Shown here: in pieces, positions 2,262 to 57,853 of the stretch
Layout: each line of letters starts with the position of its first letter
How positions within the stretch are numbered: position 1 is the stretch's first letter
Source of the DNA: Macrostomum lignano
Taxonomy: Eukaryota
Assembly: GCA_002269645.1 (NCBI GenBank)
Contig: NIVC01000472.1
Location: 27,879-91,878 of the forward strand
Length of the DNA: 64,000 nt
Direction of reading: 5' to 3'
Translations under genes and position numbers: made by a program
Notes under the pieces: model-generated
What the model saw: the letters and a program-made list of their open reading frames with translations, nothing else
Told to the model about the DNA's origin: nothing
Databases searched by the model: none

Positions 2262-6536
<4,275 letters not shown>

Positions 6537-8411: not shown

Positions 8412-11400
8412 TCACTCGTCCTTCCCATTGGCTAGAAAAGTACTCAATGAGTCATCCATGGCGCTCATGAAAGGCGTGGTTGGAGGTGCGGCCAGTTTCC
8501 CGGTGAACTTGCTGACATACTGACCGTCTCTGTAGGTGGTGATGTCCTCATCTCGACTATCGAACCACTTGTAGAACAGCTGGGACGCGTCAAGGTCGAA
8601 GCCATAATTAGCCTGTTTGGCCAGCCCAACCGTGTAATCCGTCTGAAGATCGACAGCTTCTTGGTGGCTTTTCAGCGCTGCCTCTCTGAAAAATGAAAGT
8701 TAACCAATTAAAATTCCAACAACTGAGCGCATAAAAACGGGTGGACGTGTTGTACCCAAGCACGCACTCATACACTTCCTTCATGCTCACCGCTCCAGCC
8801 AAGGTTTCGTGTCGGCGTCCATCTCGGCAGAACTTGGCAGCTGGATGCCGCCAGTCAGGTAACGAACTGTCCACAGCGCCTGTGCATCGAACATTGGGAA
8901 GCTGTAGAATTGGTTCTGAGCTCCCACATACATCAGGCGGTTGTTGCCACCAGCGAGCCAAATGATGCCTTTGTACAGTCCGGCCGGGTACAAAAGGTTC
9001 GGACCGCGAAGTCGCAGTTGCTCGGCCAGGTACGGGTAGTGATGCAGGTAGCCGGTGGCCAGAATGATGCAATCGATCTAAATTTAGGGGAACATGACAA
9101 TTAGAAGGTCAGACCATTCATTTTAGGAACCGATAGAATTCATTGATCATTTGTTCGAGTCCATTTCTCTGACACAATTTTTAGGAAGTTATATTTGAAA
9201 AGTGCATTATTTGTTATAGTGAAACAACAGAAGTACATATAATTATCAAATAATGTCTGAGCCACTTTTTCAACTGCAAAATAAGACAATACAAGACTTC
9301 CAAGAAGCATATTGACAACCTTTTCCACCGAGCCATCAGCGAATCGAGCCCAGCCTTCTGTGCCTCCGCCGTCGCTTGGACCGACCTCCGTCACCAGGGG
9401 TCGCTCGGACACGCTTTCCGGCCAGCGAAATCCTAGCGGGTTGGTGCGGTAGCTGCTGATCACCCTGGAGGCGCCGAACTTGACTGACTGCAGCACCGAG
9501 TCCTCAGCTGAGTAGCTGGAGCCGACAACCAGCACCCGCTTGCCGGCGAATTCTCGCCAGCTGCGCAGGTCGTGCGTGTGCACCACGCGTCCTGGGAAGC
9601 GCTCGATGCCTGGATTAGATGGTCAATTATAGATAATTGAGAGGTTTTCTACAGATTCTCCATTCTAATTAAGATAAAATGTACTTTTAAACTAATTGAG
9701 CTGGGTTGTTTCGCGACTGTTTTTTCCTGCAGCCGTTGCAGGTACCCTAGCCTGTAGGTCATTGCGCCAACTGTAGCTGGAGCCCCGCAAAAAGCTGGAG
9801 CACAATGGAAGATATTCAGGCCGCACATTCATTTACACTACTAGACCCAGGTGAGTTAGCCCAATGCTTACTGCAGCAGAAAAGTAAGTATTGCTTTCCG
9901 ATTTTTTTATTGCGTTGAGTTCCAACGCAGAGCTGCATATGGTGTAAGACTGTTTAGCTACTCACTGTGGCCGAGATCAGTAGCTAATAGACAAAGGCAC
10001 TTCTTTCATTTCACTTAGTCGTTGGCCAGAGCAAGACAACGCGGGGCCATAAATTATATTTTATTGTTGAACAAACAGCCCGCTATAGCTTCAAGTGTCA
10101 GCCTGAAGGTAGACAGCACAATAAAGCGTCTGAATAAAAAAATGAAATCATTCTTTGAAGGAGGGTTCGCTTACACAATCAAGTGAAGAGGCTGAGAGAT
10201 TTAAAGCTGAGCTCTACGCTAAAATGACGCGTGGACGAGGCGCCAGCACCAGGGGCTTTAGCACCAGGGGCTTTAGCACCAGGGGCTTTAGCACCAGGGG
10301 CTTTAGCACCAGGGGCTTTAGCACCAGGGGCTTTAGCACCAGGGGCTTTAGCACCAGGGGCTTTAGCACCAGGGGCTTTAGCACCAGGGGCTTTAGCACC
10401 AGGGGCTTTAGCACCAGGGGCTTTAGCACCAGGGGCTTTAGCACCAGGGGCTTTAGCACCAGGGGCTTTAGCACCAGGGGCTTTAGCACCAGGGGCTTTA
10501 GCACCAGGGGCTTTAGCACCAGGGGCTTTAGCACCAGGGGCTTTAGCACCAGGGGCTTTAGCACCAGGGGCTTTAGCACCAGGGGCTTTAGCACCAGGGG
10601 CTTTAGCACCAGGGGCTTTAGCACCAGGGGCTTTAGCACCAGGGGCTTTAGCACCAGGGGCTTTAGCACCAGGGGCTTTAGCACCAGGGGCTTTAGCACC
10701 AGGGGCTTTAGCACCAGGGGCTTTAGCACCAGGGGCTTTAGCATCAGGGGTGCCAGCACCAGGGGCTTTAGCATCAGGGGCTTTAGCATCAGGGGTGCCA
10801 GCACCAGGGGCGCCAGCACCAGGGGCGCCAGCACCAGGGGCGCCAGCACCAGGGGCACCAGCACCAGGGGCGCCAGCACCAGGGGCGCCAGCACCAGGGG
10901 CGCCAGCACCAAGGGGCGCCAGCACCAGGGGCGCCAGCACCAGGGGCGCCAGCACCAGGGGCGCCAGCACCAGGGGCGCCAGCACCAGGGGCGCCAGCAC
11001 CAGGGGCGCCAGCACCAGGGGCGCCAGCACCAGGGGCGCCAGCACCAGGGGCGCCAGCACCAGGGGCGCCAGCACCAGGGGCGCCAGCACCAGGGGCGCC
11101 AGCACCAGGGGCGCCAGCACCAGGGGCGCCAGCACCAGGGGCGCCAGCACCAGGGGCGCCAGCACCAGGGGCGCCAGCACCAGGGGCGCCAGCACCAGGG
11201 GCGCCAGCACCAGGGGCGCCAGCACCAGGGGCGCCAGCACCAGGGGCGCCAGCACCAGGGGCGCCAGCACCAGGGGCGCCAGCACCAGGGGCGCCAGCAC
11301 CAGGGGCGCCAGCACCAGGGGCGCCAGCACCAGGGGCGCCAGCACCAGGGGCGCCAGCACCAGGGGCGCCAGCACCAGGGGCGCCAGCACCAGGGGCGCC

Positions 11401-12502
11401 AGCACCAGGGGCGCCAGCACCAGGGGCGCCAGCACCAGGGGCGCCAGCACAGGTTAACTCGGGGATAAAATATTGTATCTGTTGGATTTCGAAGCGCACC
11501 CCAGAGACTAGAGTCATCCTACCTTTGAAGTAGGGCACATTAGGGTTGGAGAAGTGCCCGCTGCAGTTGACAACGTAGTCAAACTCTTTTGGATCAAGTA
11601 CACGGTTTTGCTCCAGGTCCTTCACCAGCACACTGAACTTCTCCTTGGCTGGGTCGAAAGTCACGCTTTGAACCGAGTGTAGCAGAGTCACCTTGGGCTT
11701 CAGGTTGTACTGGTTCCAGCGGCCTGAAATTTGACAAGAAATTTCAATTAATTTAGTGTGTAATAACGTTTAAAGGTGATCTTTTAATACGCTGATACTG
11801 AATGAGCTCCGATACTTTCTAGGGCTGTAGGGTAAATTTAAACAAAAAAGCTCTCAAACTTTAAGAGTAAAAATGTCTAAGTCACACCTGCCGCAGGAAA
11901 ATAACAATTATCATTAGATGGTTTAAACAAGCGCGCCAATACTGTACGCAGGCACGAACTCATACACACGCTCACACAGGGCGACCCAAAGCCAAACACG
12001 TCAGCGACTGAACTGCTTTGCCCCATTAACAAGTAGTAGAATACAAAATTGCAAAATTACAACCGGTTGAAAACCACTCAACTTCAACGTACCAGACAGA
12101 TAGTCCCTAATCGCTTCTCTCGGCAGAAACGATGGTGTCTTACGACCGAAGTGCTGCTCAAAAGTATAGTCGGGATATTCAATAGTCTCCTTGGGGTTGT
12201 TGGACCACAGGCTGCGGTACATGCTGCCGTGAACGGTTTCACCGTATTCGTCAGTGCCTGCAAAGGTTGAAACACTTGCGGTTGTATAGCACTGAAATAA
12301 AGTACATGTGGACCTACGCACCAGTTCTCCAGGTGTAGTTCCACAGACCGCTCCAGTCGTTCTGTTTCTCAAAGCAGGCCACCTGAGGCATTTCTCCAAC
12401 AGCCCTGCCGCCTTGAAGCCGCAGCTTCTCCAGGTGGTAGAGCACCGACATTCCCGAGGGTCCGGCCCCGATAACGCAAAGTGATCTTTTGGCTGCCTGC
12501 AT
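8412..12502 (-). CDS. Tmm-like flavin-containing monooxygenase, copy 2; exons 12502-12322, 12257-12093, 11723-11523, 9609-9320, 9077-8791, 8685-8412; 465 aa
   Basis: Same intron positions and phases as copy 1, and exons 2-6 have identical lengths (165/201/290/287/274). Exon sum is 1398 nt. Motifs GAGPSG, FPGRVVHTHDLR, GSSYSAED and ATGY are present. Confidence 0.93.
10241..11452. repeat. 15-bp minisatellite, two sub-arrays (GCACCAGGGGCTTTA then GCACCAGGGGCGCCA)
   Basis: Near-perfect tandem array in FMO copy 2 intron 3; source of the spurious RGFST/APGAL ORFs. Confidence 0.97.
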
Positions 12503-13998
12503 CTTCTCTTTGTCTTTTTCCGAAAATAACAAGCTTAAATGAAACCCGTGGCATTGTGTTTTATTTTTATCCCGATGCTGCACCAAAAAAGTTGATAAAA
12601 AGTTAACGAGACAATTTAATAATTTTTTTTTTCGATCAAGTCAAAAAACGCATTGTTTATCTTTTACAAAAAACGGAAGCAGCTTTTATATATCAAATTA
12701 AAATTAAAAACAAAAAATACAGTAAAAATTATTTTAGCAAAACTTATTGGTCAAAAATTGATTCGATGGTAGCTAAATTTTGCAGATAAAACAAAATTTA
12801 TATTAATGGTCTTTGGGTGTTTTTCTTAATACGACAAAATCTATCATACAAGCGTATTAACAGTAAACGATAAGAATATATAAGTAGTTTTCGCTGCATT
12901 AAGAATAAATATTTAAGTAGACTTATAACTGGAAAAGTAGAAAACGATTCATTCCATTGCATTAGAAAAATCGTGATATTTTATTTCAAAAAAATTATTT
13001 TAGAAAAAAATAATTTACCGCCATTTTTGCATGCGCAATTTAACGATCGTCGTCTTATTTTTACAATGTAAAATGCGCCGCCTACAGCGAACAATATACC
13101 AGCTGGTACAAGCACAACGTGTGCACACAGATCAGACCACACTTAAGGGATTTTTACATCTGAAGTTGCTGATTTATACAAATACACGTATATTATAGCT
13201 ACAGCTAAATTGAATAAATGGTACTTAATGAGTAAAGATCTAAAGGCCAAAGGTTTTTCTACTCAATAGTTTTTGTCCGAGACGGGCTTAAACAAAAAAA
13301 CGTTAAAAGTAAATTTTGTCAATTTTTTGCAAATCTATTGCATAAAACATTTGCTATTTTTTAGCTTCTACCATTCCTGCTAACCTATTTTTTACACTTA
13401 TCAGGTCAGTCTGACCCTGTGTGCTATCTGTGCATCGGCTTAGTATTTTTCGCTTAGCTAATTAAAATACGAGTTTGCGCAGTAAAGTGCTAATTAACTT
13501 TGCTAAATAAATTAAAGCCAACGCCTAAGGTTCTAGAAAAAGTGGATAAAATAAATGCCTTTAGATTATACAAGGGGCCTATAGAATTTGATATTTAGAC
13601 TTATTCAACATGAAAATAAAATCTAGCTTTAAAAAGTACGATCTATTGAATTTAATTCTCACGAGACTTTTCTCTCATGAACTAACCTGAACTCAGTTCA
13701 GCAGACTGCTACTAGTGTGTTCAGTTCAGCTTAGGTTTAAAATGCCACGTGACATTAAGACAATTTAAAAAAAAAATCTTGTCTTTTTCAAATTTATTGC
13801 ACTTAATTCTTACAATATAATAGTCAAATTTCATGCAGAACCCTGCAGTTGCTCAAAATGGCACCTGCAATGAGCTGCGCAGTTTCAATAAGGATAAGTC
13901 AATATATATGCAGCTTGTGTAGGGCCGAGCTAAGCAGCACTTCTAAACAGTTTAAAAAAATATTCAGTTAGTCTGTAGCCCTGTAATATAGCCTCTCG

Positions 13999-15261
13999 AT
14001 GATTCCGGTGAGTTTTCCTGCAGCTTATACAACCATTTTTAATAGCTAAAATTAGTTGCTTTGGCTAATTGAAAAGAAGCCAACGTCCAATTGACCCACT
14101 TATTGAGCCTCAAACTGGCTTGTATGTACATTCCGCAACATGTTCATGTGTGCACCCCGAAACTACAGTGACCAAAGAGTGGCAGCTTTTAATCCAACTC
14201 ATAGTCGTAATCTAACTTTCATTCAGTACAGCTCTTCTTGCGATACCTAGTGAAATCAGTAAACAAAGCCGATTGCAAACGTTACATTCAGACCGAGAAA
14301 AATGGATCGAGAGGGTGGGAGAGACTAGAAAGAGTGAATCGAGTGCACAAAAATACTCATAAAAATATTCATTGCTTGTCTACTCGGCTCTGTGAAATTG
14401 CAGTTACATGCACTGGCAGCAGGCGTCCTGTGCGCTGCCCTGGCACTATGCGCAAGCGCCAATGAAGACCTGATGCACCGGCGCTGCTCTGCCCAGTGGA
14501 CTCTGGTGGCCACGCACCAGAACTGGAGCCCGAAACCAACTGAGAAATCGTTTCACTATCAAGTGGGCGCGCACAAGCTTCAAAACTCCCGGAACTTACT
14601 GAAGTCCATTCTAGTGACAGTCAAAGACGATGGGATGCGATTCCCATCTACAGCTGCCGGCATAGGTACTCCGAGTACTAAATATGGCACTTTTAAAGTT
14701 CCAGCCTATGCGACCGTCAATGTTTGGCAGCTGGTTGCTCGAACAGGCAGCGAGGTTGCGAGCCTTGAGAAAACGATCGCTCTCAGAGATCAACGAAAGC
14801 CGTATTCAGTAGTATCTTGCCAAGTCACTTACCAGCTGCCGCAGCGCATCACTGGCAACACCTGGGTGCAGCTCAGGCACGACGGCACCGGAAAGTACTT
14901 GACAACCACCAACAGAAAGGGTTGGGACGCTGGGACGCTGAGCTCAAGCAAGAACAACAAGTTTAGATTCGAGGAGATCAGATCGGGTGTCTACAGAATA
15001 GTTGCCGACTCAGTCCGTTTCTCTGGATACAATTACCTGTACTCCTCCTTTGCCGGGGGCATCTATTTGGATGATAGCGACACCTCAAACGGGAAGCAGC
15101 TCTGGACGCTGAGCACCAGCGACCTGAGAGCCGGAGACTCCATCGCCATCGAGAATGTGTACTACCCCGGTGCCTACATGATCAGGTACGAAGGCTCAAC
15201 TACCAATGTGTTCTGCGAGTACACGAGCCACCCAGACTATTGGACTGTTGAACTGGCCTGA
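13999..15261 (+). CDS. Secreted lysenin-family protein (aerolysin-type N-domain plus C-terminal beta-trefoil), copy 1; exons 13999-14007 and 14404-15261; 288 aa
   Basis: ATGATTCCG|GTGAGT donor and TTGCAG| acceptor give the signal peptide MIPLHALAAGVLCAALALCASA. C-domain motifs NRKGWDAGTL, FSGYNYLYSSFAGGIYLD, TNVFC and DYWTVELA match recalled earthworm lysenin SRKSWPAATL, YSGYEYAYSSDQGGIYFD, TNVYC and DKWILEVV. Confidence 0.88.
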
Positions 15262-16504: not shown

Positions 16505-17798
16505 ATGGTTCGAGTAAGTGCGCTAACTTTTTGTTTGAATCATATAATACTCAGTTATATTTTATAGATAACAAATTATTAATGTTCAAGCATACCTGCA
16601 GTTAAAATTTGCATTCCTGTTCTTTTTAAATTTGTTTTAGTTTTGGAAGTCACGTTGTTAGCATTTTGCAGCAAAACAAGATCTGAGTTCATTCGATTTT
16701 GTTTGAATTTGTCAAATTAAACCATATTAAAAACTTGAGTATTAAAGAGTGACAAGGTTAAACTATTCTTAGATAAAAATGATAAAACAGAAAGTAAGAA
16801 AAGAAACCTATTTAACGTTGTGTGCCTTGAAGACGTGACTGAGTCATTGTAGCAAGATTAGAGGGGTGACCATATTTACCATTGCTTTTCATCATTTCAT
16901 ATTTACAAAAATTCTCCAGGCGCTCAGCCTCCTGGCCCTGTGCGCTCTGGCGATATGTACATCTGCCGAAGCCGCAGGCGACACGGTATCCAAATCGTGC
17001 AGTGCTCAATGGACGCTGGTTGCTACGCTGGAAAATTCTCAAAAACGAGCAGTTCTGCACAATTTTCACCACCATGTCGGGTTGCGCAGCCTGCACAATG
17101 CTCATAAAGTCCCTTGGGAGACTTTGATATCGATTTCGGTGACCACCCAGATCCTTGGCGACCCTCATGGAGTGTCGGAATTTATTTCCACCAATCTCGG
17201 ACGTCCGAGAGCGACACTCGGATCCGTGCTTGTCCCAGCAAAGTCGGTCGCCAAAATCTGGCAGCTTGTTGTCCGCACCCACGGCGAAGTCTTTAAATTC
17301 CGAAGAACGAAATCGGTCAGAGGGTCGCAGAGCCCGCCACCGATTCTGTCCTGCCACGCGTCTTACCAAGTGAAGAGACGCATCACGGAGCAATCTTGGG
17401 TGCACTTGAAGCACGAAAGCTCGAATATGTATTTGGTAACCACTAACAGAAGAGGCTGGGACGCCGGCACGCTGGGGTCCTCAGCTAGCAACAAGTTTCG
17501 CTTTCAACAAATCAGGCCAGGTACCTACAGGATCGTTGCCTACTCATACAGGTTCAGCGGGTACAGGTATCTTTACTCGTCCATGGCCGGTGGGATCTAC
17601 CTAGACGACAGCGACTTGTCGAATGAGAAGCAGCTGTGGACGCTGGATAGAACTGATCTGAGAGAGGGTGACTCGATCGCCATCCAGAATGTGTACTACC
17701 CCGGAGGATATATGATTAAATACGAAGGCTCAACTACCAATGTCTTCTGCGAGTACACTAACTACCCAGACCGTTGGATTGTTGAACTGGCTGACTGA
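16505..17798 (+). CDS. Secreted lysenin-family protein, copy 2; exons 16505-16513 and 16920-17798; 295 aa
   Basis: ATGGTTCGA|GTAAGT donor and CTCCAG| acceptor give the signal peptide MVRALSLLALCALAICTSAEA. Same 9-nt first coding exon structure as copy 1, and a C-domain closely similar to copy 1. Confidence 0.88.
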
Positions 17799-26935: not shown

Positions 26936-27545
26936 AAGAGCGCTGAAAGAGGTTGAGAGTGCGGGGTTCACCGTCAGATAAGACGTGAAGCGCAGAGGTC
27001 GGCGTGGGGCAGAAGCTTGCGCTTAGCCATGGCCCTATGGGGCAGGATACGAATGTCAGCGTCAATCAGACGGCGGGAAGTCTTAGCCGCATACCTGCGG
27101 ACAAGATGTCCAGCGGAGGAATGTTGAGGAAGGCGTTGAGGCCATCGTAAGGAGCAGACGGAGGGGCGCTCATGATCATGCGACATGCGCGCCCTTGCGT
27201 TCTCCTGAGAGCCTCAAGGCAGGTCTTTATCTGCAGGGCGCCAGCCCAGATCAGGCCGCCATACGAGATAGCAGGCCTAACCATTGCAGTGTCGATCCAC
27301 CAGAGGCGCTTGGGGGTGAGACCCCAGGTGGTGCCGAAGGCTAGGTGCAGCTGCGCGAGGACTGCGAGGGCTTTCTTGGCTTTTGCTTCAACTTGGGGCG
27401 ACCAGTTGAGCCTGAGGTCCAGGGTAATACCGAGACATTTAGTCTGCTTGCAGAAGGGGATTTCCCTTCCGTAAAGCGTGAGCGGCCGAGTCTGCCACTT
27501 GGTCCTGCTGGTGAACATGATCGCTGCGGTCTTAGTCTCAGAGAG
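26936..27545 (-). mobile_element. Non-LTR retrotransposon fragment (R1/LOA-like reverse transcriptase C-terminal/thumb region)
   Basis: ORF 27066-27518 has KCLGITLDLRLNW, WGLTPKRLWW, VRPAISYGGLIW and LNIPPLD, typical of the R1/LOA group. Confidence 0.8.
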
Positions 27546-27582
27546 CCTTAATAGTGGATAAATAGTGGATAAATCCAGGCAC

Positions 27583-27685
27583 AGGGTGAGTGTTCAGGGT
27601 GAGTGTTCAGGGTGAGTGCTCAGGGTGAGTGCACAGGGTGAGTACACAGGGAGAGTGCACAGGGTGAGTGCTCAGGGTGAGTGCC
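27583..27685. repeat. 13-bp minisatellite (CACAGGGTGAGTG); larger array at 37363-37598
   Basis: Tandem copies. Confidence 0.88.
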
Positions 27686-30045: not shown

Positions 30046-30560
30046 CCCTATCCCTTATCCTCTATCCCCTATCCCTTATCGCCTATCCCCTATCCCTTAT
30101 CCCCTATCCCCTATCCCTTATCCCCTATCCCCTATCCCTTATCCCCTATCCCCTATCCCTTATCCCCTATCCCTTATCCCCTATCCCTTATCCCTTATCC
30201 CCTATCCCCTATCCCTTATCCCTTATCCCCTATCCTTTATCCCTTATCCCTTATCCCTTATTCCTATCTCTTATCCCTTATTTTTATCCCTTATCCCATA
30301 TTCCTATCTCTTATCCCTTATCTCCTATCCCTTATCCCTTATTCCTATCTTTTATCCCTTATCTCCTATCCCTTATCCCTTATTCCTATCCCCTATCCCT
30401 TATCCCCTATCCCCTATCACTTATCCCCTATCCCCTATCACTTATCCTCTATCCCCTATCTCTTATCCCCTATCCCCTATCCCTTATCCCCTATCCCCTA
30501 TCACTTATCCTCTATCCCCTATCTCTTATCCCCTATCCCCTATCCCTTATCCCTTTTCCC

Positions 30561-33353
30561 TTATCCTCCACCCCTGATAAATGAATGGAATTTGGCCCAG
30601 ACGGTGGCATTTAAAAAACAAAGAGCGCCGCCTCCTCGCTTTTTCTGTGGTATTTCTCGATTTAAATCGCCAATGCAAAAGTACTTTTTGGCAGCTGGTA
30701 CTGGCTCGTTCTGCTCGGCTTTCTTTTCGGAGACGCACCATTTTGAATGATCCGTTCCAGACTTTATATCAGTGTTAAAGTATTTTCTGTTGTTAACTCG
30801 GCTTACACTTAAAGAGGCAGGCAAATCATCATTTCTGCTCCGTAAATATGTCTGAACTCGCAGGCGCCCGGCGTCAATCAAATTTGAAACAAACTCGTAA
30901 ATATCGATGCCTTCATCGTCAAACTTTGATTTCGCAATGTGGATGAATTCCACTCCGCCATAGGATGTCAGCCTGGTGCTTGATATTTCTCCGTCTGCGT
31001 TGGACTGAAGAAGAACGTTGCCGATATATTTATGCACCTGCATTCTCGCTAACTGGTCTAGAATCACAGGCCGCTGAGACGTCGGTATGGTGACGCAAAA
31101 AAATATTTGCGCATTTTGAAGGTTGAATCCATCGTTCGCTCCGGGGGGCCAGGTGTAACTAGCTTCCGAAAAATTTGGAAACTTTGGCATTGAGTGCATC
31201 AGCCAGAATCCAGTTGATTCACCAAACATGACAACTCCCTTAGCGTGAGCACTACCACTTGGCGCACTTCCGATTGGAGGCTGGTCACTGTAAGAGTAAA
31301 TACTCGAACTACGTCCCGGGCCATTCCTGATTGGCAGAAGAAATTCTTGATCTAGTGTGGCCTTGAGAGGAATGTTATGGTTGATCCGACCGTTCTGACC
31401 TCTGATGTTCTGATTGTTTTCATGCCATTCATTATCCCGAGAGGACAAATATTTGTAAGCATGATTACCACTGTTCTTCACCATGACGAACCAGTCAACT
31501 GAGTTCCCCTCGTCAATCTTGCACGTGAAGCCATCTGCACCTGGCACATCCTGTCCTTGATTGGTCAGCTCGTTTCCAGCTGTTATGGTATCGTTCAGTA
31601 GGTTCCACAGCCCCACATTTTCCATGCACACCAGGCAGCCAGCTCGATCCTGATGTGCCTTCACCCGGTCCAAGTCGCCTGCGCACACAAATTTCCTGCT
31701 CTCCCCACCTTCCACTGGGATCTCTCCGATGCTCCACTTTGAGTTGTCCTGGCTGAACAGCATGCCAATAAATTCATTTCCAAGTTGAAACTTAACAGCA
31801 GGCACATTCGCTGCATCACCGTTTGATGGTAAAGGCCGAGAAGTGCCGAGACGGTGGGACTGGACTTGGACTTTTGTCAAGCTGCGACCATCTACCTGTA
31901 TTCCACTGTAAATATCCCTTGCACGGCGAGATGGCTTGATATTGACGTGCAATTTTTTACCGTCTTTCGTGCGCAGCTGTGTATACGAAATTTCGGCTGG
32001 AGGTTTGTCGTTTAGCAATTTTGTTACCATGCTTTCTACATTTTTAATTTCCGGCCTTTTCAGCGTCACGCAGAAGAATGACTGGCCATCGAGTTCCTCC
32101 CAATTGACATTCAAATTCATCTGCGGCACGCTGTGCATCATCCAGAATCCGGTGTCTTCACTGCTGGAGCCGTGAAGAATCACGCCCTTCATGTGAGCTC
32201 CTGAATTTCTGGCTGCTTGACGATCAGGAGGATGATCGTTGTATACAAACAGTTCTGATGCGGTTCTTCTGTATTTGGCTTGTTCAAAAGTTTTTAACAC
32301 AGGTCCAAGTTCTGGATCGGAAATCCATCCGCCTCCCTCTCCGTTGCTCGCCACATAAATGAGCCGCTTCGAGCGGTCCTGCTTGATGGCGAAGAACCAG
32401 TCCAATTTTTTGTTCTCGTGATCTCGACACGAAATTTTTGATGCGTCATCTGCTGCAGTGGATTCTGTCTTAGGTTCCTCACCATGCTTCACCGTTTCTG
32501 GTTTATTGTCACCAGTAGCAGCGACTGTGCTGTGCTTCTCAGCTGTTGCACCGGCTGCATCGCCTTTGCTCACCTCAGATTGCAAATATTTTGGGCCAGC
32601 TTCACCTGCTTCGCCATCCATGCACTTTCGTGGCTGCCACACTTTGGAGTTGCAGCTGCACTTGTCGAACTGCTCAGCCGCTGCGCCTCGCTCTAAAACT
32701 TGTTGCCATGGTTACTGGAGTGTTTGAACTTGTGGGCCAAATTACAAGTTGTTTGAGTCCTTCTAGAAAAAATGAGTCACTGACCTGATCCACTCCGATC
32801 CCAACAGTTCGGATACCTCGAATCACAAGTTTGGAGTTCTGGGCGGTGGCGCAGCTGCGAGTAGCAGAGGCCGCACTCGAAGGCCGCGGCAAGCAGCAGC
32901 AACCGCAGAATTGCTGCATCGAAAAAGAAGCGCTGAGCGTCTGAGTTTCCTTGCACAACTGGGTTATGCACTGATTGGCCTACTGTTAGTAGGATATAAA
33001 TTGTCTTTGGTGTCAGTTTATTAGTCGTTTGCTCTGACAGCACTATCGCATCGATACTGCCGTGAACAGAAAAGCCGTGAACAGTGACGAACATTTTTTC
33101 ACGGAAAATGCAGTGGAACTGAGTGCCTATAGTACCTAGTTCACTGGTGGAATGAAGGGTTTGCTCAATCCAGTGAGAATTATCTCGTAAAATAATATTT
33201 GCTCAATGTTTTGGGAATTTCAAAAATTTCCTCAGACTTTGCTTCGAATCGATTGTGTCTAACAGCTAGTAAATAGTTTAGAAAATAGAAAAATAGAAAA
33301 TAGAAACTAGTATCTTTATAGTACATACCTTTATCACTTTCGGTTAAGAACAT
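30561..33353 (-). CDS. Secreted DNase II (plancitoxin-like) with two tandem DNase II domains; proposed exons 33353-33329, 32940-32785, 32692-30561; ~770 aa
   Basis: ORF 30561-32642 has two full sets of DNase II motifs (DWF..K, HxKG, FWxxHSxP, DxSKW, C.GDL.R). Upstream phase-1 exons give a signal peptide (LRLLLLAAAFECG). The exon 2/3 junction is the least certain part. Confidence 0.88.
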
Positions 33354-34034: not shown

Positions 34035-35200
34035 TATACTGTATTATACGGCTCGTACTGTCTATACTGTACTATACTGTACTATACTGTACTATACTGT
34101 CTATACTGTCTATACTGTCTATACTGTACTATACTGTACTATACTGTACTATACTGTACTATACTGTACTATACTGTACTATACTGTACTATACTGTACT
34201 ATACTGTACTATACTGTACTATACTGTACTATACTGTCTATACTGTACTATACTGTACTATACTGTACTATACTGTACTATACTGTACTATACTGTACTA
34301 TACTGTACTATACTGTACTATACTGTACTATACTGTACTATACTGTACTATACTGTCTATACTGTACTATACTGTACTATACTGTACTATACTGTCTATA
34401 CTGTCTATACTGTCTATACTGTACTATACTGTACTATACTGTACTATACTGTACTATACTGTACTATACTGTACTATACTGTACTATACTGTACTATACT
34501 GTACTATACTGTACTATACTGTACTATACTGTCTATACTGTACTATACTGTACTATACTGTACTATACTGTCTATACTGTCTATACTGTCTATACTGTCT
34601 ATACTGTCTATACTGTACTATATTATCTGTACTGTACTATACTGTCTGTACTGTACCATACTGTCTGTACTGTACTATAATGTCTGTACTGTACTATACT
34701 GTACTATACTGTCTATACTGTACTATACTGTCTGTACTGTACCATACTGTCTGTACTGTACTATACTGTCTGTACTGTACTATACTGTCTGTACTGTACC
34801 ATACTGTCTGTACTGTACTATACTGTCTGTACTGTACCATACTGTCTGTACTGTACCATACTGTCTGTACTGTACCATACTGTCTGTACTGTACTTTATT
34901 GTCTGTACTGTACTATACTCTCTGTACTGTACTTTATTGTCTGTACTGTACTATACTATCTGTACTGTACTATACTGTCTGTACTGTACCATACTGTCTG
35001 TACTGTACTATACTGTCTGTACTGTACTATACTGTCTATACTGTACTATACTGTACCATACTGTCTGTACTGTACTATACTATCTATACTCTCTGTACTG
35101 TACTTTATTGTCTGTACTGTACTATACTATCTGTACTGTACTATACTGTCTGTACTGTACTATACTGTACTATACTGTACTATACTGTACTATACTTTCT
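34035..35200. repeat. 10-bp satellite (TACTATACTG) with variants
   Basis: Tandem array; source of the YCTILYYTVL ORFs. Confidence 0.96.
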
Positions 35201-35230
35201 GTACCGTAATACGGTACGGCGAATTCTGAG

Positions 35231-35800
35231 ACAACAACAACAACAACAACAACAACAACAGAGTACGCTGCCAGTTCGCAAAAGCAGCGTCCAGATGGCG
35301 CGCTTCGAAGCTTGGGCGCGAACAAAGGCAGAGTCCGGGGCGCCGGCGTCAGCCAGCAGACAGTCGACGTAGCGCCGAGTCCTCGCCTCATCGCGAGGAC
35401 TCGGCATCGCGCGGATGACGTGGCCTGCCAGCTGGAGTCGCCGACGGCGCAGCAGATCGCTAGGACGGGCCAGGCCGGCGCGATGATAGAGCGCCGTGTT
35501 GGTGACTCGCTCGTTGCCGATCTTGAAGGCGGCGCGCAGCAGGCCAGCGTGCGCCGCGTCGACTTGAGCCTCGAGCGAGTCTGTCAGCGTCCAGGTCTCG
35601 GCGTTGTATAACAGGACGGTCTCGATCACCGCCTGGAACAGCGCCGCTCTCTGGCGGTCCGGTAGGGCCTCGGACTGCAGGACTGACCTTATAGAACGAA
35701 AGGCAGCCCAGGCAAGTCCTCGGCGACGCCGCAGATCCTCGCGGACGTCGGGAACCAGACCGCCGAGGTAGACGAACTGCTGACATCTTGGAAGCTCTGA
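35231..35800 (-). mobile_element. 5'-truncated RTE-like LINE 3' end with (GTT)n tail and internal deletions
   Basis: FVYLGG, LLYNAETWTLT and RRRRLQLAGHVIR motifs; (CAA)n on the + strand at 35231-35260; near-identical to 57211-57853 apart from deletions. Confidence 0.88.
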
Positions 35801-36269
35801 GACAACACTCATTATAGGGCCTTTAGAGACGCCAGTGTTTCGAAAATATTTCTGTCATTTGAGCAGCAGATAGCCGGAAAAGCAAACCTGTCAGCGCCAC
35901 TGCAAGTAAGGTTTTAGTAAAGCTTAAAGCAAGACTTCCGCTCTGCAAAACTGCAATGACTGGGACAACAAGATGAATCGCAATAATTTGCGTTAGTTAC
36001 AGCAATTCGATCGAAAATCATAGCTTTGAGATCTCCGAAAGGGTTAGTTAATCTGCGGATAAGCTAATCTCTACCTTCGTAATTCTCCCTGCCTGTCTCT
36101 CGCTCTCCCTCTCTTAGCTATAGGACTTAGACTGCTCGCCACAGATCAAGCTACCTTGGGGCTGACCATCTGACACGAGTGGGGGGCCAGCACTCTAATT
36201 GATTTATTTCTGAGACCTGAAGCCCGAAGGCTTCCCCAAAGGTGCCGAAAAGGCCGAAACCCATCAAGA

Positions 36270-37362: not shown

Positions 37363-38457
37363 GAGTGCACAAGGTGAGTGCACAGGGTGAGTGCACAGGG
37401 TGAGTGCTTAGGGTGAGTGCACAGGGTGAGTGCACAGGGTGAGTGCACAGGGTGAGTGCTTAGGGTGAGTGCACAGGGTGAGTGCACAGGGTGAGTGCTT
37501 AGGGTGAGTGCTCAGGGTGAGTGCTCAGGGTGAGTGCTCAGGGTGAGTGCACGGGGTGAGTGCTCAGGGTGAGTGCTCAGGGTGAGTGCACAGGGTGACT
37601 CGCGAGCTTTTTTGAGGATTAAAATACCTGCCTTTTTATCTGAAGGAAAAACCTAATAGTTATGTGCTATTCTCCAATAAAAAGTTAGAGGACCACGAAA
37701 CGCAAGGACACTGCAAAAAATTCCTTTTGGAAAGTTGTTGTCAACTTCAAAATAGCTTTACTTAATTCTGCATCCTCCGAGTTCTTGAGTTCTTGAGTTC
37801 ACGAGTTCACGAGTTCACGAGTTCACGAGTTCATGAGTTCATGAGTTCACGAGTTCACGAGTTCACGAGTTCACGAGTTTATGAGTTCACGAGTTCACGA
37901 GTTCATGAGTTCACGAGTTCACGAGTTCACGAGTTCCAGAGTTCATGAGTTCATGAGTTCCAGAGTTCACGAGTTCCAGAGTTCATGAGTTCACGAGTTC
38001 ACGAGTTCACGAGTTCACGAGTTCACGAGTTCATGAGTTCCAGAGTTCGAGTTCACGAGTTCACGAGTGAAGTACATGTAGACAAATGCGGGTACAACCA
38101 AAATGCTAAATGTATTCTAAACTACCAGCACTCAAATATTTACTGAAGAGTAAACAATTGACTGCATCAGCACAAGCTCAATGCCCGGTGTCAGCGGCAT
38201 GCTTGCGTGCAAATTAACTTAAATCTATTTGCAGAAAAATGCTATCGAAATTAACGCCTACCGAATGGAGACAGGAGGCTTTCAAATAATGTAATTGGCT
38301 GGTTTCACCTGCCTCAAATGGTCAAACAACAGGACTATGCCCAGAGCAAATATTAGACTGGGAGATAAAAGTCCCAAGTTGTCTCCAATCATCATGCAGA
38401 ATCCAGTTTGAAAAATATTACTCACAGAGATTCTGGATTTCGCATTCCAACGCTCGA

Positions 38458-38898: not shown

Positions 38899-41204
38899 AG
38901 TGCTGCTGCGGATGGCACCGACTTTGGAAATCCAATTTAAAGCAGTCATTTATGATTGGCAACTCTTAAGTATGACCCTCTATGACTATGAACCCAGTCT
39001 ATGAATATCAATGAGCATGGCTTTGTACGGCAAAACTCTTACAGAATCGGCGTTACTGCCTCTGTGACGACACAGCTCTGTGACTTCTCTGCCTCCGCAG
39101 GAGTTGCAGCCTCTATAGAAAAGATGCTAAATATACTCAACAGAAAATTAGCTAATCCTGATCTCGTGTTAGGCACCTCTGGATGATGATGCGAGCCTCT
39201 GTATGCGTTCTAAATTGAAACTGTTGTCTTATAACCAGTATGACTATAACTATAATTTAATCATCTCAGTTCTCACTGCATGAAATTTTCTGCTTGCATA
39301 TAGTGGATGCATTCAGGTACTCTGCTATATCTATCCAGAATCCCAGAGAAACGGCTGGAAAAAACTTTTAGGTTATTATTATACTGCATGTACATAACCA
39401 TGCTCGGGGTTGGGTGATCAGAGGTGAATGCTCTGGGTTGGGTGATCAGAGGTGAATGCTCGGGGAGGGTGCTCAGGGTGGTTGCCGGGGTGGGTGCTTA
39501 GGGGTGGTTGCCGGGGGTGGGTGCTCAGGGTAGTTGCCGGGGGTGGGTGCTCAGGGTGGTTGCAGGGGGTGGGTGCTCAGGGTGGTTGCAGGGGTGAGTG
39601 CTCAGGGTGGTTGCGGGGGTGGGTGCTCAGGGTGGTTGCAGGGGTGAGTGCTCAGGGTGGTTGCGGGGGTGGGTGCTCAGGGTAGTTGCCGGGGGTGGGT
39701 GCTCAGGGTGGTTGCCGGGGGTGGGTGCTCAGGGTGGTTGCCGCGGTGGGTGCTCAGGGTGGTTGCCGGGGTGGGTGCTCAGGGTGGTTGCCGGGGGTGG
39801 GTGCTCAGGGTGGTTGCCGCGGTGGGTGCTCAGGGTGGTTGCCGGGGTGGGTGCTCAGGGTGGTTGCCGCGGTGGGTGCTCAGGGTGGTTGCCGCGGTGG
39901 GTGCTCAGGGTGGTTGCCGCGGTGGGTGCTCAGGGTGGTTGCCGCGGTGGGTGCTCAGGGTGGTTGCCGGGGTGGGTGCTCAGGGTGGTTGCCGCGGTGG
40001 GTGCTCAGGGTGGTTGCCGGGGTGGGTGCTCAGGGTGGTTGCCGCGGTGGGTGCTCAGGGTGGTTGCCGCGGTGGGTGCTCAGGGTGGTTGCCGCGGTGG
40101 GTGCTCAGGGTGGTTGCCAGGGTGGGTGCTCAGGGTGGTTGCCGCGGTGGGTGCTCAGGGTGGTTGCCGCGGTGGGTGCTCAGGATGGTTGCCGGGGGTG
40201 GGTGCTCAGGGTGGTTGCCGGGGTGGGTGCTCAGGGGGCTCAGGGGTGGTTTCCCGCGTATCGCGGTCTCTAATTGCTATGCGATGCAATACAGTTAATA
40301 AGTTGATTATTGGAGACTTGTTTTTCGAAATTACAATAAAACTAATCTTTTACGAGTCATATTAGGACTTTTATTATTCTTTTATAATCTTATTAAGTCT
40401 TAATAAGATGGCGCTTGCAATGTCCAATGACAGACTTACTTTTAACCAGATTGATAGGTAAACTAACGGTAAGTAATATCCACTGTTGGGCACCGTTAAT
40501 GACAAAGGCATTAAATTAATTAAAACAAAAAATCTTAACTTACTAACTTTCGAATTTGTTGAATTGACCGAAAGTTAACTGATAATCAATAATAAATCGT
40601 TAATCCGTTAGCCTTATCGCAGAAAATACCGGATCGAATTCTGCAGTTTTTTAACAAAAAACAGACTTCATATAATGCAATACATGTACAAGGATATCAT
40701 CCAGGGATTAAGAGAATAATAACAAACACGCTCGAGATAAGTAAAACCTAAATGTAAAAGACTACTAAAAGTAAGTATAACAAAGTAAGAAAAAAGTCAA
40801 TCAAATGGTCACGTTCAGGCAAAAAAGTTCATCATTTTATTGATAAAGGCAGTAAGTAACAAGTTGGTGCATTGAATGATCAATGATCATAATTATAAAA
40901 GACATTAACTAGGCATACAGGTAAAATTATGTGGCAGGTGTAATTTTACTTATTTGTTCGATCTCGCAAATCTTACTAAATGTCACCAAGTTGTAGCAGG
41001 CTTATAGCGTCTGTTTCTAAGATTGCCCTAATTCACTCGATTTCCTGGAAATCTTGTGGTAGCGATTGGTGCCCAAGCGGTAAGACACTGTCTAAAGGCC
41101 TAAACTAAGTCCGAAGGTATTCCGTTTTCCGGGGATCCAGCGTCAGCTTCTAAGCTTCCTAATGCCTACTATTATTAGCCTAAACAGCTTCCTTAATATG
41201 CCTA

Positions 41205-43045: not shown

Positions 43046-44856
43046 TTAATTCCTAGTGTACACTTCGAATACCAAGGCGTTGAAGGCACGCCAGACATCA
43101 GGATCTTTGATACAGACAGCGGCTCCACCCTGGGTCAGGTGATCATCCAGTCGGTTTAGGTCAGAGAGGCAGACTATGTTCGATTGCTTTGAGACGCACC
43201 ACTTTGAGTGATCTGTTGTGGTGTTCCATTCATTATTAACTGACATTCCGATTTTTTTAATATTTTTAACTAAGCTGTTGCCATGGTCAATCCTGTCTTT
43301 GTCGGAAATCGTTCTGAGCCAGGACTGAACCCGGAATTCTCCTACGTTGTAGGACTCTCTAATTTTCTGATATATGCAACCTCTGCTGTTCTTTCCTTTT
43401 ACAAACAAATCGAATGCGACCCTGTTAAACGATGTAAAACTGTGCATTGAAACCGTTCGATCTTCGATCCCTTGAGACTGTTGCCGTGGATGATGGTACC
43501 TTGGCTTCGCCTTTTCAAGCCATCCAGAGAGAGCTTTAATAGTTTCGCTCGCTACGCTGATGCAGATGAACGATTGGGCATTCGTATCATCTTGACTGAA
43601 CTCGTTTCGATCAGCAAAGTTGGGGAAATGTCTCGCCGAGAACATCATCCAGAATCCGGGATTCCCAATCATGAACAGTCCTTTCAGATGGCCGAAACCA
43701 GAAGTCCAGGTTTCATTTGGAGGAGGCTTGTCACTGTAAGCAAAAACTGCGTCTCTATTTTGTCTAGCCTGCTCCAGTGTTTCGCGCACCGGTCCTTGTG
43801 TTCGAATATCTTCAACGTATTTCCAATTTACCTTATTCATTGATGACAAGTAAGCATATTCATGCGAACCTGGCTTTTTAATCGCAATGAACCAGTCTCT
43901 GTAATTTCCATTAACTTTGCAGCTGTAGCTTTTAAGATTGTTTCCTTCATCAATCATTGTCTTGATTGCATCAGCAGCAGTTCGAGCCGCTTCCCGCTGG
44001 CTGCGCCCACCTCCCCTTGCCTCGCCGCCTCCACCGGATGCCTGAGGAGAGGCTGAGCTTCCCGAGGCTGCAGGATATCCAGCGCCCTTGCCTTTGTTAC
44101 CGTTTGGGGCCACCAGCATCGGAGGGGTGCCGTCCACCGGCCTCCTGAAAGCTGAACACTTCGGGCACTCGCCACTCAAGTTGCCGACGAGACAGAAGTT
44201 GGAGCCTTCATCAGATCCCATTGTTGCTGCAGCAATGCAACACAACAGAAGCAGCCTTAGGTAGTTCGAAGCCATGTCTGAAACCGAAGGACGGAGGAAA
44301 GCCACATCATTATATAAGAGTTTAACCAATCTAAACAGACTTTGCTAGGAATGCGAGGAACCCTTTTGTTCAACAATAGGAAATAGGCGATGAATCTTAG
44401 ACTTTCAAAATTGAGGCTTTGTTAATGCTCCAAATACTTCTTACTGCATGGGTTCAATCCATATTTGCTTACTCAACACAAGAGTACGCTATATAATCTA
44501 ATAGTACATTTATGCCCAGAAATAGCAGCGTAAAAAGCTAGCTCAGCAGAGTTTTAGAGGTCCACTACACCAGAGCACCCCACACACCACTCCGCAGCAC
44601 GCACCACTTCAGAACACACAACACTCCACAGCAATGCGCTGGAACTGAATGTCTATAGTACCTAGCTCACTGGTGGCATGAAGGATTTCCTCGAATCAGA
44701 CCTGAGTGAAATTTCTCATAAACTACGATTTTGCTAAATGTTTCTTGAGAATTCGAAATGTCGTCAGATTTTTGCTTCTAACATACGTCGCTAACAGCTG
44801 AAATTGAAACTAGTATCTTCATACTACATACCTTTATCGCTTTCCTTTAAGAACAT
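43046..44856 (-). CDS. Secreted single-domain DNase II (plancitoxin-like); exons 44856-44832 and 44277-43046; 418 aa
   Basis: GHLKG and DHSKW HxK motifs, DWFIAIK, SDLNR. Signal peptide MASNYLRLLLLCCIAAATMG. The phase-1 GT-AG join is in frame (1257 nt). Confidence 0.9.
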
Positions 44857-47531: not shown

Positions 47532-54660
<7,129 letters not shown>

Positions 54661-57210: not shown

Positions 57211-57853
57211 GGCGCTGACGGACAGGCGAGTGAGCTTCCAAGATGTCAGCAGTTCGTCTACCTCGGCGGTCTGGTTCCCGACGTCCGCGAGGATCTGCGG
57301 CGTCGCCGAGGACTTGCCTGGGCTGCCTTTCGTTCTATAAGGTCAGTCCTGCAGTCCGAGGCCCTACCGGACCGCCAGAGGGCGGCGCTGTTCCAGGCGG
57401 TGATCGAGACCGTCCTGTTATACAACGCCGAGACCTGGACGCTGACAGACTCGCTCGAGGCTCAAGTCGACGCGGCGCACGCTGGCCTGCTGCGCGCCGC
57501 CTTCAAGATCGGCAACGAGCGAGTCACCAACACGGCGCTCTATCATCGCGCCGGCCTGGCCCGTCCTAGCGATCTGCTGCGCCGTCGGCGACTCCAGCTG
57601 GCAGGCCACGTCATCCGCGCCGAGGCCTACTGTCCAGAGCCGGTGCAGGAGGTGCTGCTACTTACGTTGCAGGCACCCTACCGGCGGGGACAGGCGAGGA
57701 CACGGCGCTACGTCGACTGTCTGCTGGCTGACGCCGGCGCCCCGGACCCTGCCGGCGGTGCGGCCTTTGTTCGCGCCCAAGCCTTGAAGCGTGCCATCTG
57801 ACGCTGCTTTTGCGATCCGGCAGCGTACTCTGTTGTTGTTGTTGTTGTTGTTG
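57211..57853 (+). mobile_element. 5'-truncated RTE-like LINE 3' end with (GTT)n tail
   Basis: ELPRCQQFVYLGG, ETVLLYNAETWTLT and RRRRLQLAGHVIR; tail at 57830-57853. Confidence 0.9.

Follow-up and report, generated by a model that had tools for sequence, protein, structure and literature searches.

A two-module DNase II gene of Macrostomum lignano combines a canonical module with a module predicted to be catalytically impaired

In lysosomes, DNA is cleared mainly by DNase II, a metal-independent endonuclease that works at acid pH and leaves 3'-phosphate ends, and innate DNA sensing sets in when this enzyme fails. How the eukaryotic enzyme is assembled from subunits, and what each of its two catalytic histidines does, is still disputed. 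A stretch of 64,000 nucleotides from Macrostomum lignano (contig NIVC01000472.1 of the assembly GCA_002269645.1, positions 27,879 to 91,878 of the forward strand; hereafter the window, in whose numbering all positions are given) carries a gene with two DNase II modules in one reading frame. A sequence-only reading, made by a model from the letters and their open reading frames (ORFs), had described it as a tandem of an enzyme and a pseudo-enzyme. Three questions are considered here: whether the two modules belong to one protein, whether one of them has lost the residues needed for catalysis, and, if so, what a module that does not cut DNA could do next to a module that does. We conclude that the gene is real and well-formed, that its second module is canonical while the first is predicted to be impaired in catalysis, and that the gene represents a rare variant of a known enzyme.

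The gene is encoded by the minus strand. Its frame is open from position 32711 to the TAA stop codon at 30563-30561, the in-frame stop upstream of it being at 32712-32714, and the first ATG, at 32621, yields a product of 686 amino acids (aa). By our own calculation, an open frame of 716 codons would arise by chance with the probability of about 1e-15, and a stop-free frame over the stretch of module 1 alone, with that of about 1e-7. The earlier description of an uninterrupted 2.1-kb exon with two complete DNase II modules is thus borne out by the frame and by a Pfam match in each half of the protein: when scanned separately against the DNase_II family (PF03265, cut-off 23 bits), the N-terminal half scores 111.8 bits (E 4.9e-32), and the C-terminal half, 191.2 bits (E 3.5e-56), so that both hits anticipated by the sequence-only reading were obtained. 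In a custom hidden Markov model (HMM) of the family, module 1 covers positions 19-174 and 210-348, and module 2, positions 22-344. The stretch between the modules has neither a stop codon nor a signal peptide, and no start codon followed by a leader; thus, the two form one polypeptide, and module 2 would be made only as a part of the fusion. The modules share 26% identity, hence the duplication is old. An assembly collapse and a fusion introduced by the gene model were both considered and ruled out on these same grounds, the low identity and the lack of any stop, start or leader between the modules. Judged by the sequence, the assembly has not created the fusion, and the duplication behind it is not a recent one.

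Both modules are basic, with the isoelectric points (pI) of 9.0 and 8.9 for module 1 and module 2, respectively. Each retains four conserved cysteines, which in module 1 would preserve two conserved disulfide pairs, and the protein contains three N-x-S/T sequons. The third conserved disulfide pair is missing: the C-terminal cysteine, present in 96% of the homologues, and its partner are absent from all three DNase II modules of the locus, that is, the two modules of this gene and a single-module paralogue on the same strand. The coordinates of all features are collected in Table 1.

In order to compare the active sites, both modules and the paralogue were aligned with 130 single-module homologues obtained in an exhaustive search of 1.84 billion cluster representatives, and 51 family positions conserved in at least 80% of the sequences served as the reference set. 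Module 2 keeps 44 of these positions, including all six catalytic ones, whereas module 1 keeps 35, its losses being concentrated in the second half-site. The first HxK motif (human H113, porcine H115; H100 and K102 in the enzyme of Burkholderia thailandensis, Bth) is present in both modules, and so is the third crucial histidine, the one of HSxP (porcine His132), which is His163 in module 1 and His476 in module 2. The second HxK motif (human H295, porcine H297; Bth H279 and K281) is complete in module 2, while in module 1 the histidine is replaced by Asn293, with Lys295 kept; therefore, module 1 has the family fold but an incomplete catalytic signature. The asparagine of GDxNR and the neighbouring SQxKRGGG loop show the same division, with Asn654 and QKKRGGG in module 2 against Asp318 and HQDRAGC (His323 for Gln, DRAGC for KRGGG) in module 1. 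Further changes in module 1 are His256 for the aligning Trp and Q-M-N for the K/R-F-P that follows HSxP. Besides His163 and Lys295, module 1 retains His143 and Lys145 of its first motif, Trp296, Arg319, Arg326, and all four conserved cysteines. All eight motifs named in the sequence-only reading, as well as the Asn codon (AAC, 31745-31743), lie where it had placed them, although it had left unstated the strand, which is the minus one. A base-calling error at the Asn codon as the sole cause of the pattern is unlikely, as at least eight neighbouring conserved positions differ too.

Table 1. Features of the two-module DNase II gene and its vicinity (HxK, histidine and lysine separated by one residue; pLDDT, predicted local distance difference test; AF2, AlphaFold2; CDS, coding sequence)
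Feature	Position	Strand	Basis or remark
Two-module DNase II CDS, first ATG to stop (686 aa)	30561..32621	-	frame open upstream to 32711
N-terminal 60 residues, acidic (pI 4.5), low complexity, predicted disordered	32442..32621	-	pLDDT <50 at residues 6-61; not a signal peptide
Module 1 (aa 61-340), complete DNase II fold, degenerate second half-site	31602..32441	-	Pfam, HMM, AF2, Foldseek
Module 1, AHMKG	32198-32184	-	translation
Module 1, first HxK (His143-Met-Lys145), intact	32187..32195	-	alignment
Module 1, HSVP (His163, equivalent of porcine His132), intact	32124..32135	-	alignment
Module 1, His256 replacing a conserved Trp (Bth W239)	31854..31856	-	Trp helps to align the second HxK motif (PMC5449587)
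Module 1, DNSKW	31748-31734	-	translation
Module 1, Asn293 codon AAC replacing the second-motif catalytic His	31743..31745	-	His in 127/130 homologues
Module 1, GDLDR	31679-31665	-	translation
Module 1, Asp318 codon replacing Asn of GDxNR	31668..31670	-	Asn in 127/130 homologues
Module 1, His323 replacing the conserved Gln of SQxKRGGG (loop AHQDRAGC)	31653..31655	-	alignment
Linker, 24 residues, acidic, no Lys/Arg, one N-x-T sequon	31530..31601	-	low pLDDT at 347-357
Module 2 (aa 365-686), canonical DNase II	30564..31529	-	His459-x-Lys461, His476, His625-x-Lys627, Asn654 all present
Module 2, AHAKG	31250-31236	-	translation
Module 2, HSMP	31196-31185	-	translation
Module 2, DHSKW	30752-30738	-	translation
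Module 2, GDLNR	30671-30657	-	translation
(CCCTATC)n microsatellite abutting the 3' end of the gene	30046..30566	.	first unit contains the TAA stop (30563-30561)
Candidate upstream exon	32817..32919	-	ATG 32919, GT donor 32816-32815, AG acceptor 32694-32693
Single-module DNase II paralogue	43046..44275	-	clear signal peptide; same strand

That the histidine of DHSKW is essential, as assumed in the sequence-only reading, agrees with the literature on both human H295 (PMC5449587) and porcine His297 (PMC11430429). In the human enzyme H113 and H295 are each essential, and H295 mutants still bind DNA (PMC5449587). The only solved DNase II, that of Burkholderia thailandensis (5i3e), is a homodimeric U-shaped clamp with 3070 square angstroms buried at the interface, in which both HxK sites face a basic cavity of 16-17 Å, the size of duplex DNA (PMC5449587). 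The published mechanisms conflict with regard to the nucleophile: for the Bth enzyme it is proposed to be the first-motif histidine, with the second one acting as an acid/base (PMC5449587), while in the porcine work, as related in PMC11430429 with reference to Cheng 2006, the roles are reversed and the second-motif His297 is the nucleophile. Under either of these mechanisms the histidine missing from module 1 is required. In Trichinella, a DNase II-like protein without the typical site (DNase II-8) had no nuclease activity, and the one family member with all three histidines was active (PMC11287892). If a pseudo-enzyme is defined by a retained fold and the loss of residues required for catalysis, module 1 is one; its inactivity is a prediction from these residues, in our opinion a sound one. 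As a prediction, then, the tandem of an enzyme and a pseudo-enzyme is upheld: module 1 lacks the second-motif histidine and the GDxNR asparagine, and module 2 is complete.

The structure predictions are in line with the alignment. Modelled alone by AF2 with an alignment of homologues, module 1 has the mean pLDDT of 90.4 and the predicted template modelling score (pTM) of 0.90, and in a Foldseek comparison its model matches 5i3e with E 2.8e-14, the template modelling (TM) score of 0.74, and the probability of 1.00. Module 2 matches 5i3e already by sequence (E 1.8e-12). The full-length AF2 model, with pLDDT of about 90 over module 2 and module 1 left unmodelled, hence confident over module 2 only, matches the same structure with E 1.2e-16 and the TM score of 0.68-0.69, normalised to 5i3e. 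By these models, both modules share the fold of the solved DNase II.

How unusual is this architecture? The exhaustive search yielded 1315 matches, and the best 150 clusters were inspected for architecture. The best relative is 35% identical (E 2e-31), and the nearest named relatives, all at approximately this level of identity, are spread over Dugesia, Bigelowiella, and Ptychodera. No relative above 35% identity and no orthologue was found in the collections searched; neither the whole protein nor module 1 had a match in word-indexed homologue searches, and an exact look-up of three proteins of the window in public assemblies found none. Besides the gene considered here, the only true multi-module DNase II proteins among the best 150 of the 1315 matches were three-module gene models of Trichinella zimbabwensis, and our literature searches uncovered no description of DNase II domains in tandem. 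On this sample of the best 150 of 1315 matches, the two-module architecture is rare. The suggestion that it is not a standard one therefore holds as regards rarity, but not uniqueness, given the three DNase II-like modules of the Trichinella zimbabwensis models. Two other candidate tandems were rejected: the eel protein P0006 consists of two near-identical truncated copies, and the model of the amphioxus protein P0189 continues across a minisatellite.

Within the window, a tblastn search for further DNase II pieces found none beyond the two-module gene and the one paralogue. The paralogue has its own substitutions: Phe212 in place of the HSxP histidine (His in 126 of the 130 homologues), an Arg where Pro is invariant, a Gln at the Arg position of KRGGG, and a His at that of the loop Gln. 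All three crucial histidines are thus found in only one of the three modules of the locus, module 2. In a neighbour-joining tree with the 130 homologues, module 1, module 2, and the paralogue cluster together on long branches. This grouping fits a lineage-specific expansion, as far as the tree of these sequences goes, and long-branch attraction could produce it as well.

The replacement seen in module 1 has parallels elsewhere in the family. The second-motif histidine is absent from three of the 130 homologues, and two of these three also carry Asp for the GDxNR asparagine. These are the P0015 cluster, conserved across Branchiostoma species, with DKSKW and GDMDR, and the ENA protein P0105, with DNSKM and GDIDR; both otherwise keep the rest of the active site. 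The probability that chance would place both Asp cases among the three sequences without the histidine is about 4e-4 (calculated by hand from the counts in the 130 homologues). This hints that the loss of the histidine and the Asn to Asp change may be a recurrent coupled substitution, which would represent a defined non-cleaving state rather than random decay.

As to the third question, the sequence-only reading had suggested DNA binding, processivity, targeting or the part of an inhibitor decoy for the first domain. We note that the solved DNase II acts as a clamp of two protomers, and for this reason we lean, by a narrow preference, towards a single-chain asymmetric clamp, in which an active nuclease is fused to a non-cleaving module as the result of an old duplication and fusion. 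The proposed course of events is as follows. The duplication and fusion would have produced one chain with two DNase II modules of the phospholipase D (PLD) superfamily. Module 2 is predicted to be a working acid endonuclease. Module 1 appears to keep the fold, the basic surface, and most of the phosphate-binding pocket; with the second-motif histidine, the partner asparagine, and the surrounding loop lost, it would most likely be unable to complete phosphodiester hydrolysis, and it would probably still hold the DNA backbone. The two modules might then pack as an intramolecular clamp, where module 1 forms the second wall and grips the DNA, and module 2 alone cuts. In this case one strand would be cut per binding event, and nicking would precede linearisation. 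A stronger version, in which module 1 is a cutter turned into a backbone-gripping jaw, the enzyme makes nicks instead of double-strand breaks, and the same conversion occurred independently in amphioxus and in another lineage, seems to us doubtful, though worth stating.

Several observations weigh against the clamp. Of the basic residues lining the Bth cavity, K20, K123, and K243, module 1 keeps the first only (Lys80), having Gln167 and Thr260 at the positions of the other two, which weakens the idea that it grips DNA. It also lacks approximately 35 positions of the family profile (175-209). The full-length AF2 model has the pTM of only 0.58, since the MAFFT alignment placed all homologues on module 2, and it is silent on how the modules pack. 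Dimerisation of the bacterial type is not established for eukaryotic DNase II. The eukaryotic enzyme is said to require a leader peptide, disulfides, and N-glycosylation (MacLea 2003, in the form in which PMC5449587 cites it), yet no leader was found for the two-module protein.

The search for a leader deserves a separate account. From the first ATG onwards the protein shows no signal peptide, and the upstream part of the minus strand, scanned as far as position 40000, yielded only one weak leader-like ORF, at 38395, and no convincing leader exon. The candidate upstream exon of Table 1 (32919-32817) joins the main frame through a 124-nt GT-AG intron at 32692, exactly the boundary given for the gene in the sequence-only reading; this base directly follows a possible ttttAG acceptor. 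The product of the candidate exon is a Cys-rich peptide unlike a signal peptide. The comparison with secreted effectors and venom proteins, made in the same reading, hence did not find support. The retained disulfide cysteines and the sequons are a hint, at the level of sequence, that the protein may nevertheless take the secretory route. Just before the main ATG, and in a different frame from it, there is an upstream ORF of 11 codons (32677-32709, minus strand; MATSFRARRSG), whose start has the context ccATGG.

The two modules need not act together. If the linker were cut after synthesis, the gene would encode a polyprotein releasing a free pseudo-DNase, serving as a decoy, a DNA binder or an inhibitor, and a free active DNase II acting apart from it. 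The 24-residue linker is acidic and modelled with low confidence, PMC3596287 describes proteolytic processing of mammalian DNase II in lysosomes, and stand-alone secreted single-module His-less DNase II-like proteins exist in Trichinella and Branchiostoma. We nonetheless consider this variant improbable, as the absence of Lys and Arg from the linker means that there is no dibasic convertase site, and the search for a signal peptide gave none. A different possibility is that module 1 is not dead, either because a catalytic histidine has been relocated (His323 or His256), or because its chemistry or substrate has changed, the module becoming, for instance, a covalent phospho-histidyl DNA trap. 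Indeed, module 1 has lost only one of six core residues of the site, keeping His143, Lys145, His163, Lys295, and Arg319/Arg326, and two conserved non-His positions near the site are now occupied by histidines; against this stands the degeneration of the asparagine partner and of the KRGGG loop as well. As for the trap, the loss of the second histidine in TDP1 H493R reportedly stabilises the covalent intermediate. The first-motif His143 is retained, and it is the first-motif histidine that acts as the nucleophile in the Bth mechanism (PMC5449587); if, on the contrary, the nucleophile is the very histidine lost here, as PMC11430429 reports for porcine His297 from Cheng 2006, a trap would be excluded. 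Altogether, an active or trapping module 1 appears to us slightly harder to believe than the cleaved polyprotein.

The remaining alternative is that no function needs to be explained: the gene could be a lineage-specific duplicate that is unexpressed and is becoming a pseudogene, with both the fusion and module 1 functionless. Consistent with decay are the lack of a signal peptide, the microsatellite running into the stop codon, the absence of an orthologue from the searched collections, the odd active-site changes of the neighbouring paralogue, and the tandem repeats that make up 31% of the region. However, a 2.1-kb frame in a repeat-rich region is very unlikely to stay free of stops without selection, given the chance probabilities calculated above for the whole frame and for module 1; moreover, module 1 keeps 35 of the 51 conserved positions, all four cysteines, and a confidently predicted fold, and module 2 is fully canonical. 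We give decay the least credence of the readings considered.

The surroundings of the gene are rich in repeats. There are 26 micro- and minisatellite arrays, together covering the share of the 64 kb given above, and many long ORFs are translated repeats; a search of the window against Rfam at the gathering threshold gave no match, and the exact patterns of the satellites had no counterpart among contigs of metagenomes or of prokaryote genomes. Exons of two tandem flavin-monooxygenase (FMO)-like genes (Pfam FMO-like) occupy 2265-4193 and 8415-12640 on the minus strand, the second gene having a minisatellite (10239-11450) within its span. The plus strand carries, at 14392-15261 and 16866-17798, a pair of intronless paralogous ORFs, each about 290-310 aa long, which begin like signal peptides and belong to no Pfam family. 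An LTR (long terminal repeat) retrotransposon pol (48303-50731, plus strand) with an aspartic protease, a reverse transcriptase (RT), and RNase H is split over three frames and hence broken; the RT homologues come from ENA assemblies, and the one named match, the nearest relative with a name, is from Macrostomum lignano. One repeat-element ORF fragment is present in two oppositely oriented copies, at 35183-35854 (minus strand) and 57211-57798 (plus strand), both with ELPRCQQFVYLGGLVPDVREDLRRRRGLAWAAFRSIRSVLQSEALPDRQRAAL, and a fragment resembling a long interspersed nuclear element (LINE) is located at 27069-27593. Finally, ORFs at 432-1625 and 61534-62229, both on the plus strand, have weak matches to the Mab-21 C-terminal domain (24.4 and 18.3 bits, respectively, with the cut-off of 24.1). 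By their sequences, these ORFs flanking the region may be cGAS-like genes situated near DNA-degrading ones.

With one intact and one half-degenerate module, the gene provides a test case for two questions: whether the clamp must have two working sites, and which histidine does what. It also bears on what the His-less DNase II-like proteins of Trichinella and amphioxus do. If the recurrence of the coupled substitution is true, it would point to a defined state of the DNase II fold, not described to date, in which DNA is bound and not cleaved. The practical weight of the observation is limited, tandems of an enzyme and a pseudo-enzyme being a familiar theme.

Compared with the canonical single-module DNase II proteins (PF03265; human DNase II alpha, C. 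elegans NUC-1, Burkholderia thailandensis 5i3e), module 2 shares with them the HxKG, HSxP, DHSKW, GDxNR, and KRGGG motifs, the four cysteines, the sequence, and the fold, and module 1 shares the fold. The differences are the presence of two modules per chain, the absence of the second-motif histidine and the asparagine from module 1, the lack of a detectable leader and of the third disulfide pair, and the best identity of 35%.

The Trichinella expansion (the three-module T. zimbabwensis protein KRZ17526.1 and its cluster mates) likewise comprises more than one module per predicted protein and has lost catalytic histidines. There, however, all modules have lost the histidines of both motifs (TSKG, DKSQW) and no active partner is present, while module 1 of the gene described here keeps the first HxK. 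Unlike this gene, the Trichinella proteins are secreted parasite proteins with leaders; the identity between them is 29% (E 6e-17), and the modules of our locus group with each other, not with Trichinella.

The closest parallel to the residue pattern of module 1 is provided by the Branchiostoma His-less paralogue (the P0015 cluster, named 'plancitoxin-1-like' at NCBI) and by P0105, which have the same pair of changes, with Lys or Asn for the second-motif His and Asp for the Asn of GDxNR, and which keep, as module 1 does, the first HxK, the HSxP histidine, and the second lysine. In contrast to module 1, they are single-module proteins with signal peptides, and their SQxKRGGG loop and Trp, eroded in module 1, are intact. 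They are not close to module 1 in the tree.

As regards the arrangement, receptor tyrosine phosphatases with their D1-D2 domains and JAK kinases with JH1-JH2 also contain a duplicated catalytic domain, one copy of which is active while the other keeps the fold and the ligand pocket without the catalytic residues. In these proteins the regulatory role of the dead domain has been experimentally shown, and their folds and chemistry are unrelated to those of DNase II; for the gene considered here, the role of module 1 is a proposed one.

Within its own superfamily the gene continues a known series. In the PLD superfamily, duplication and fusion gave rise to the pair of HxK half-sites that make up the active site (PMC5449587): Nuc has one HKD motif per chain and forms a homodimer, and PLD, TDP1, and DNase II have two per chain. 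Here the duplication and fusion step is repeated one level up, giving four half-sites per chain, with the difference that two whole active sites rather than two half-sites have been joined, and that one of the four half-sites is degenerate.

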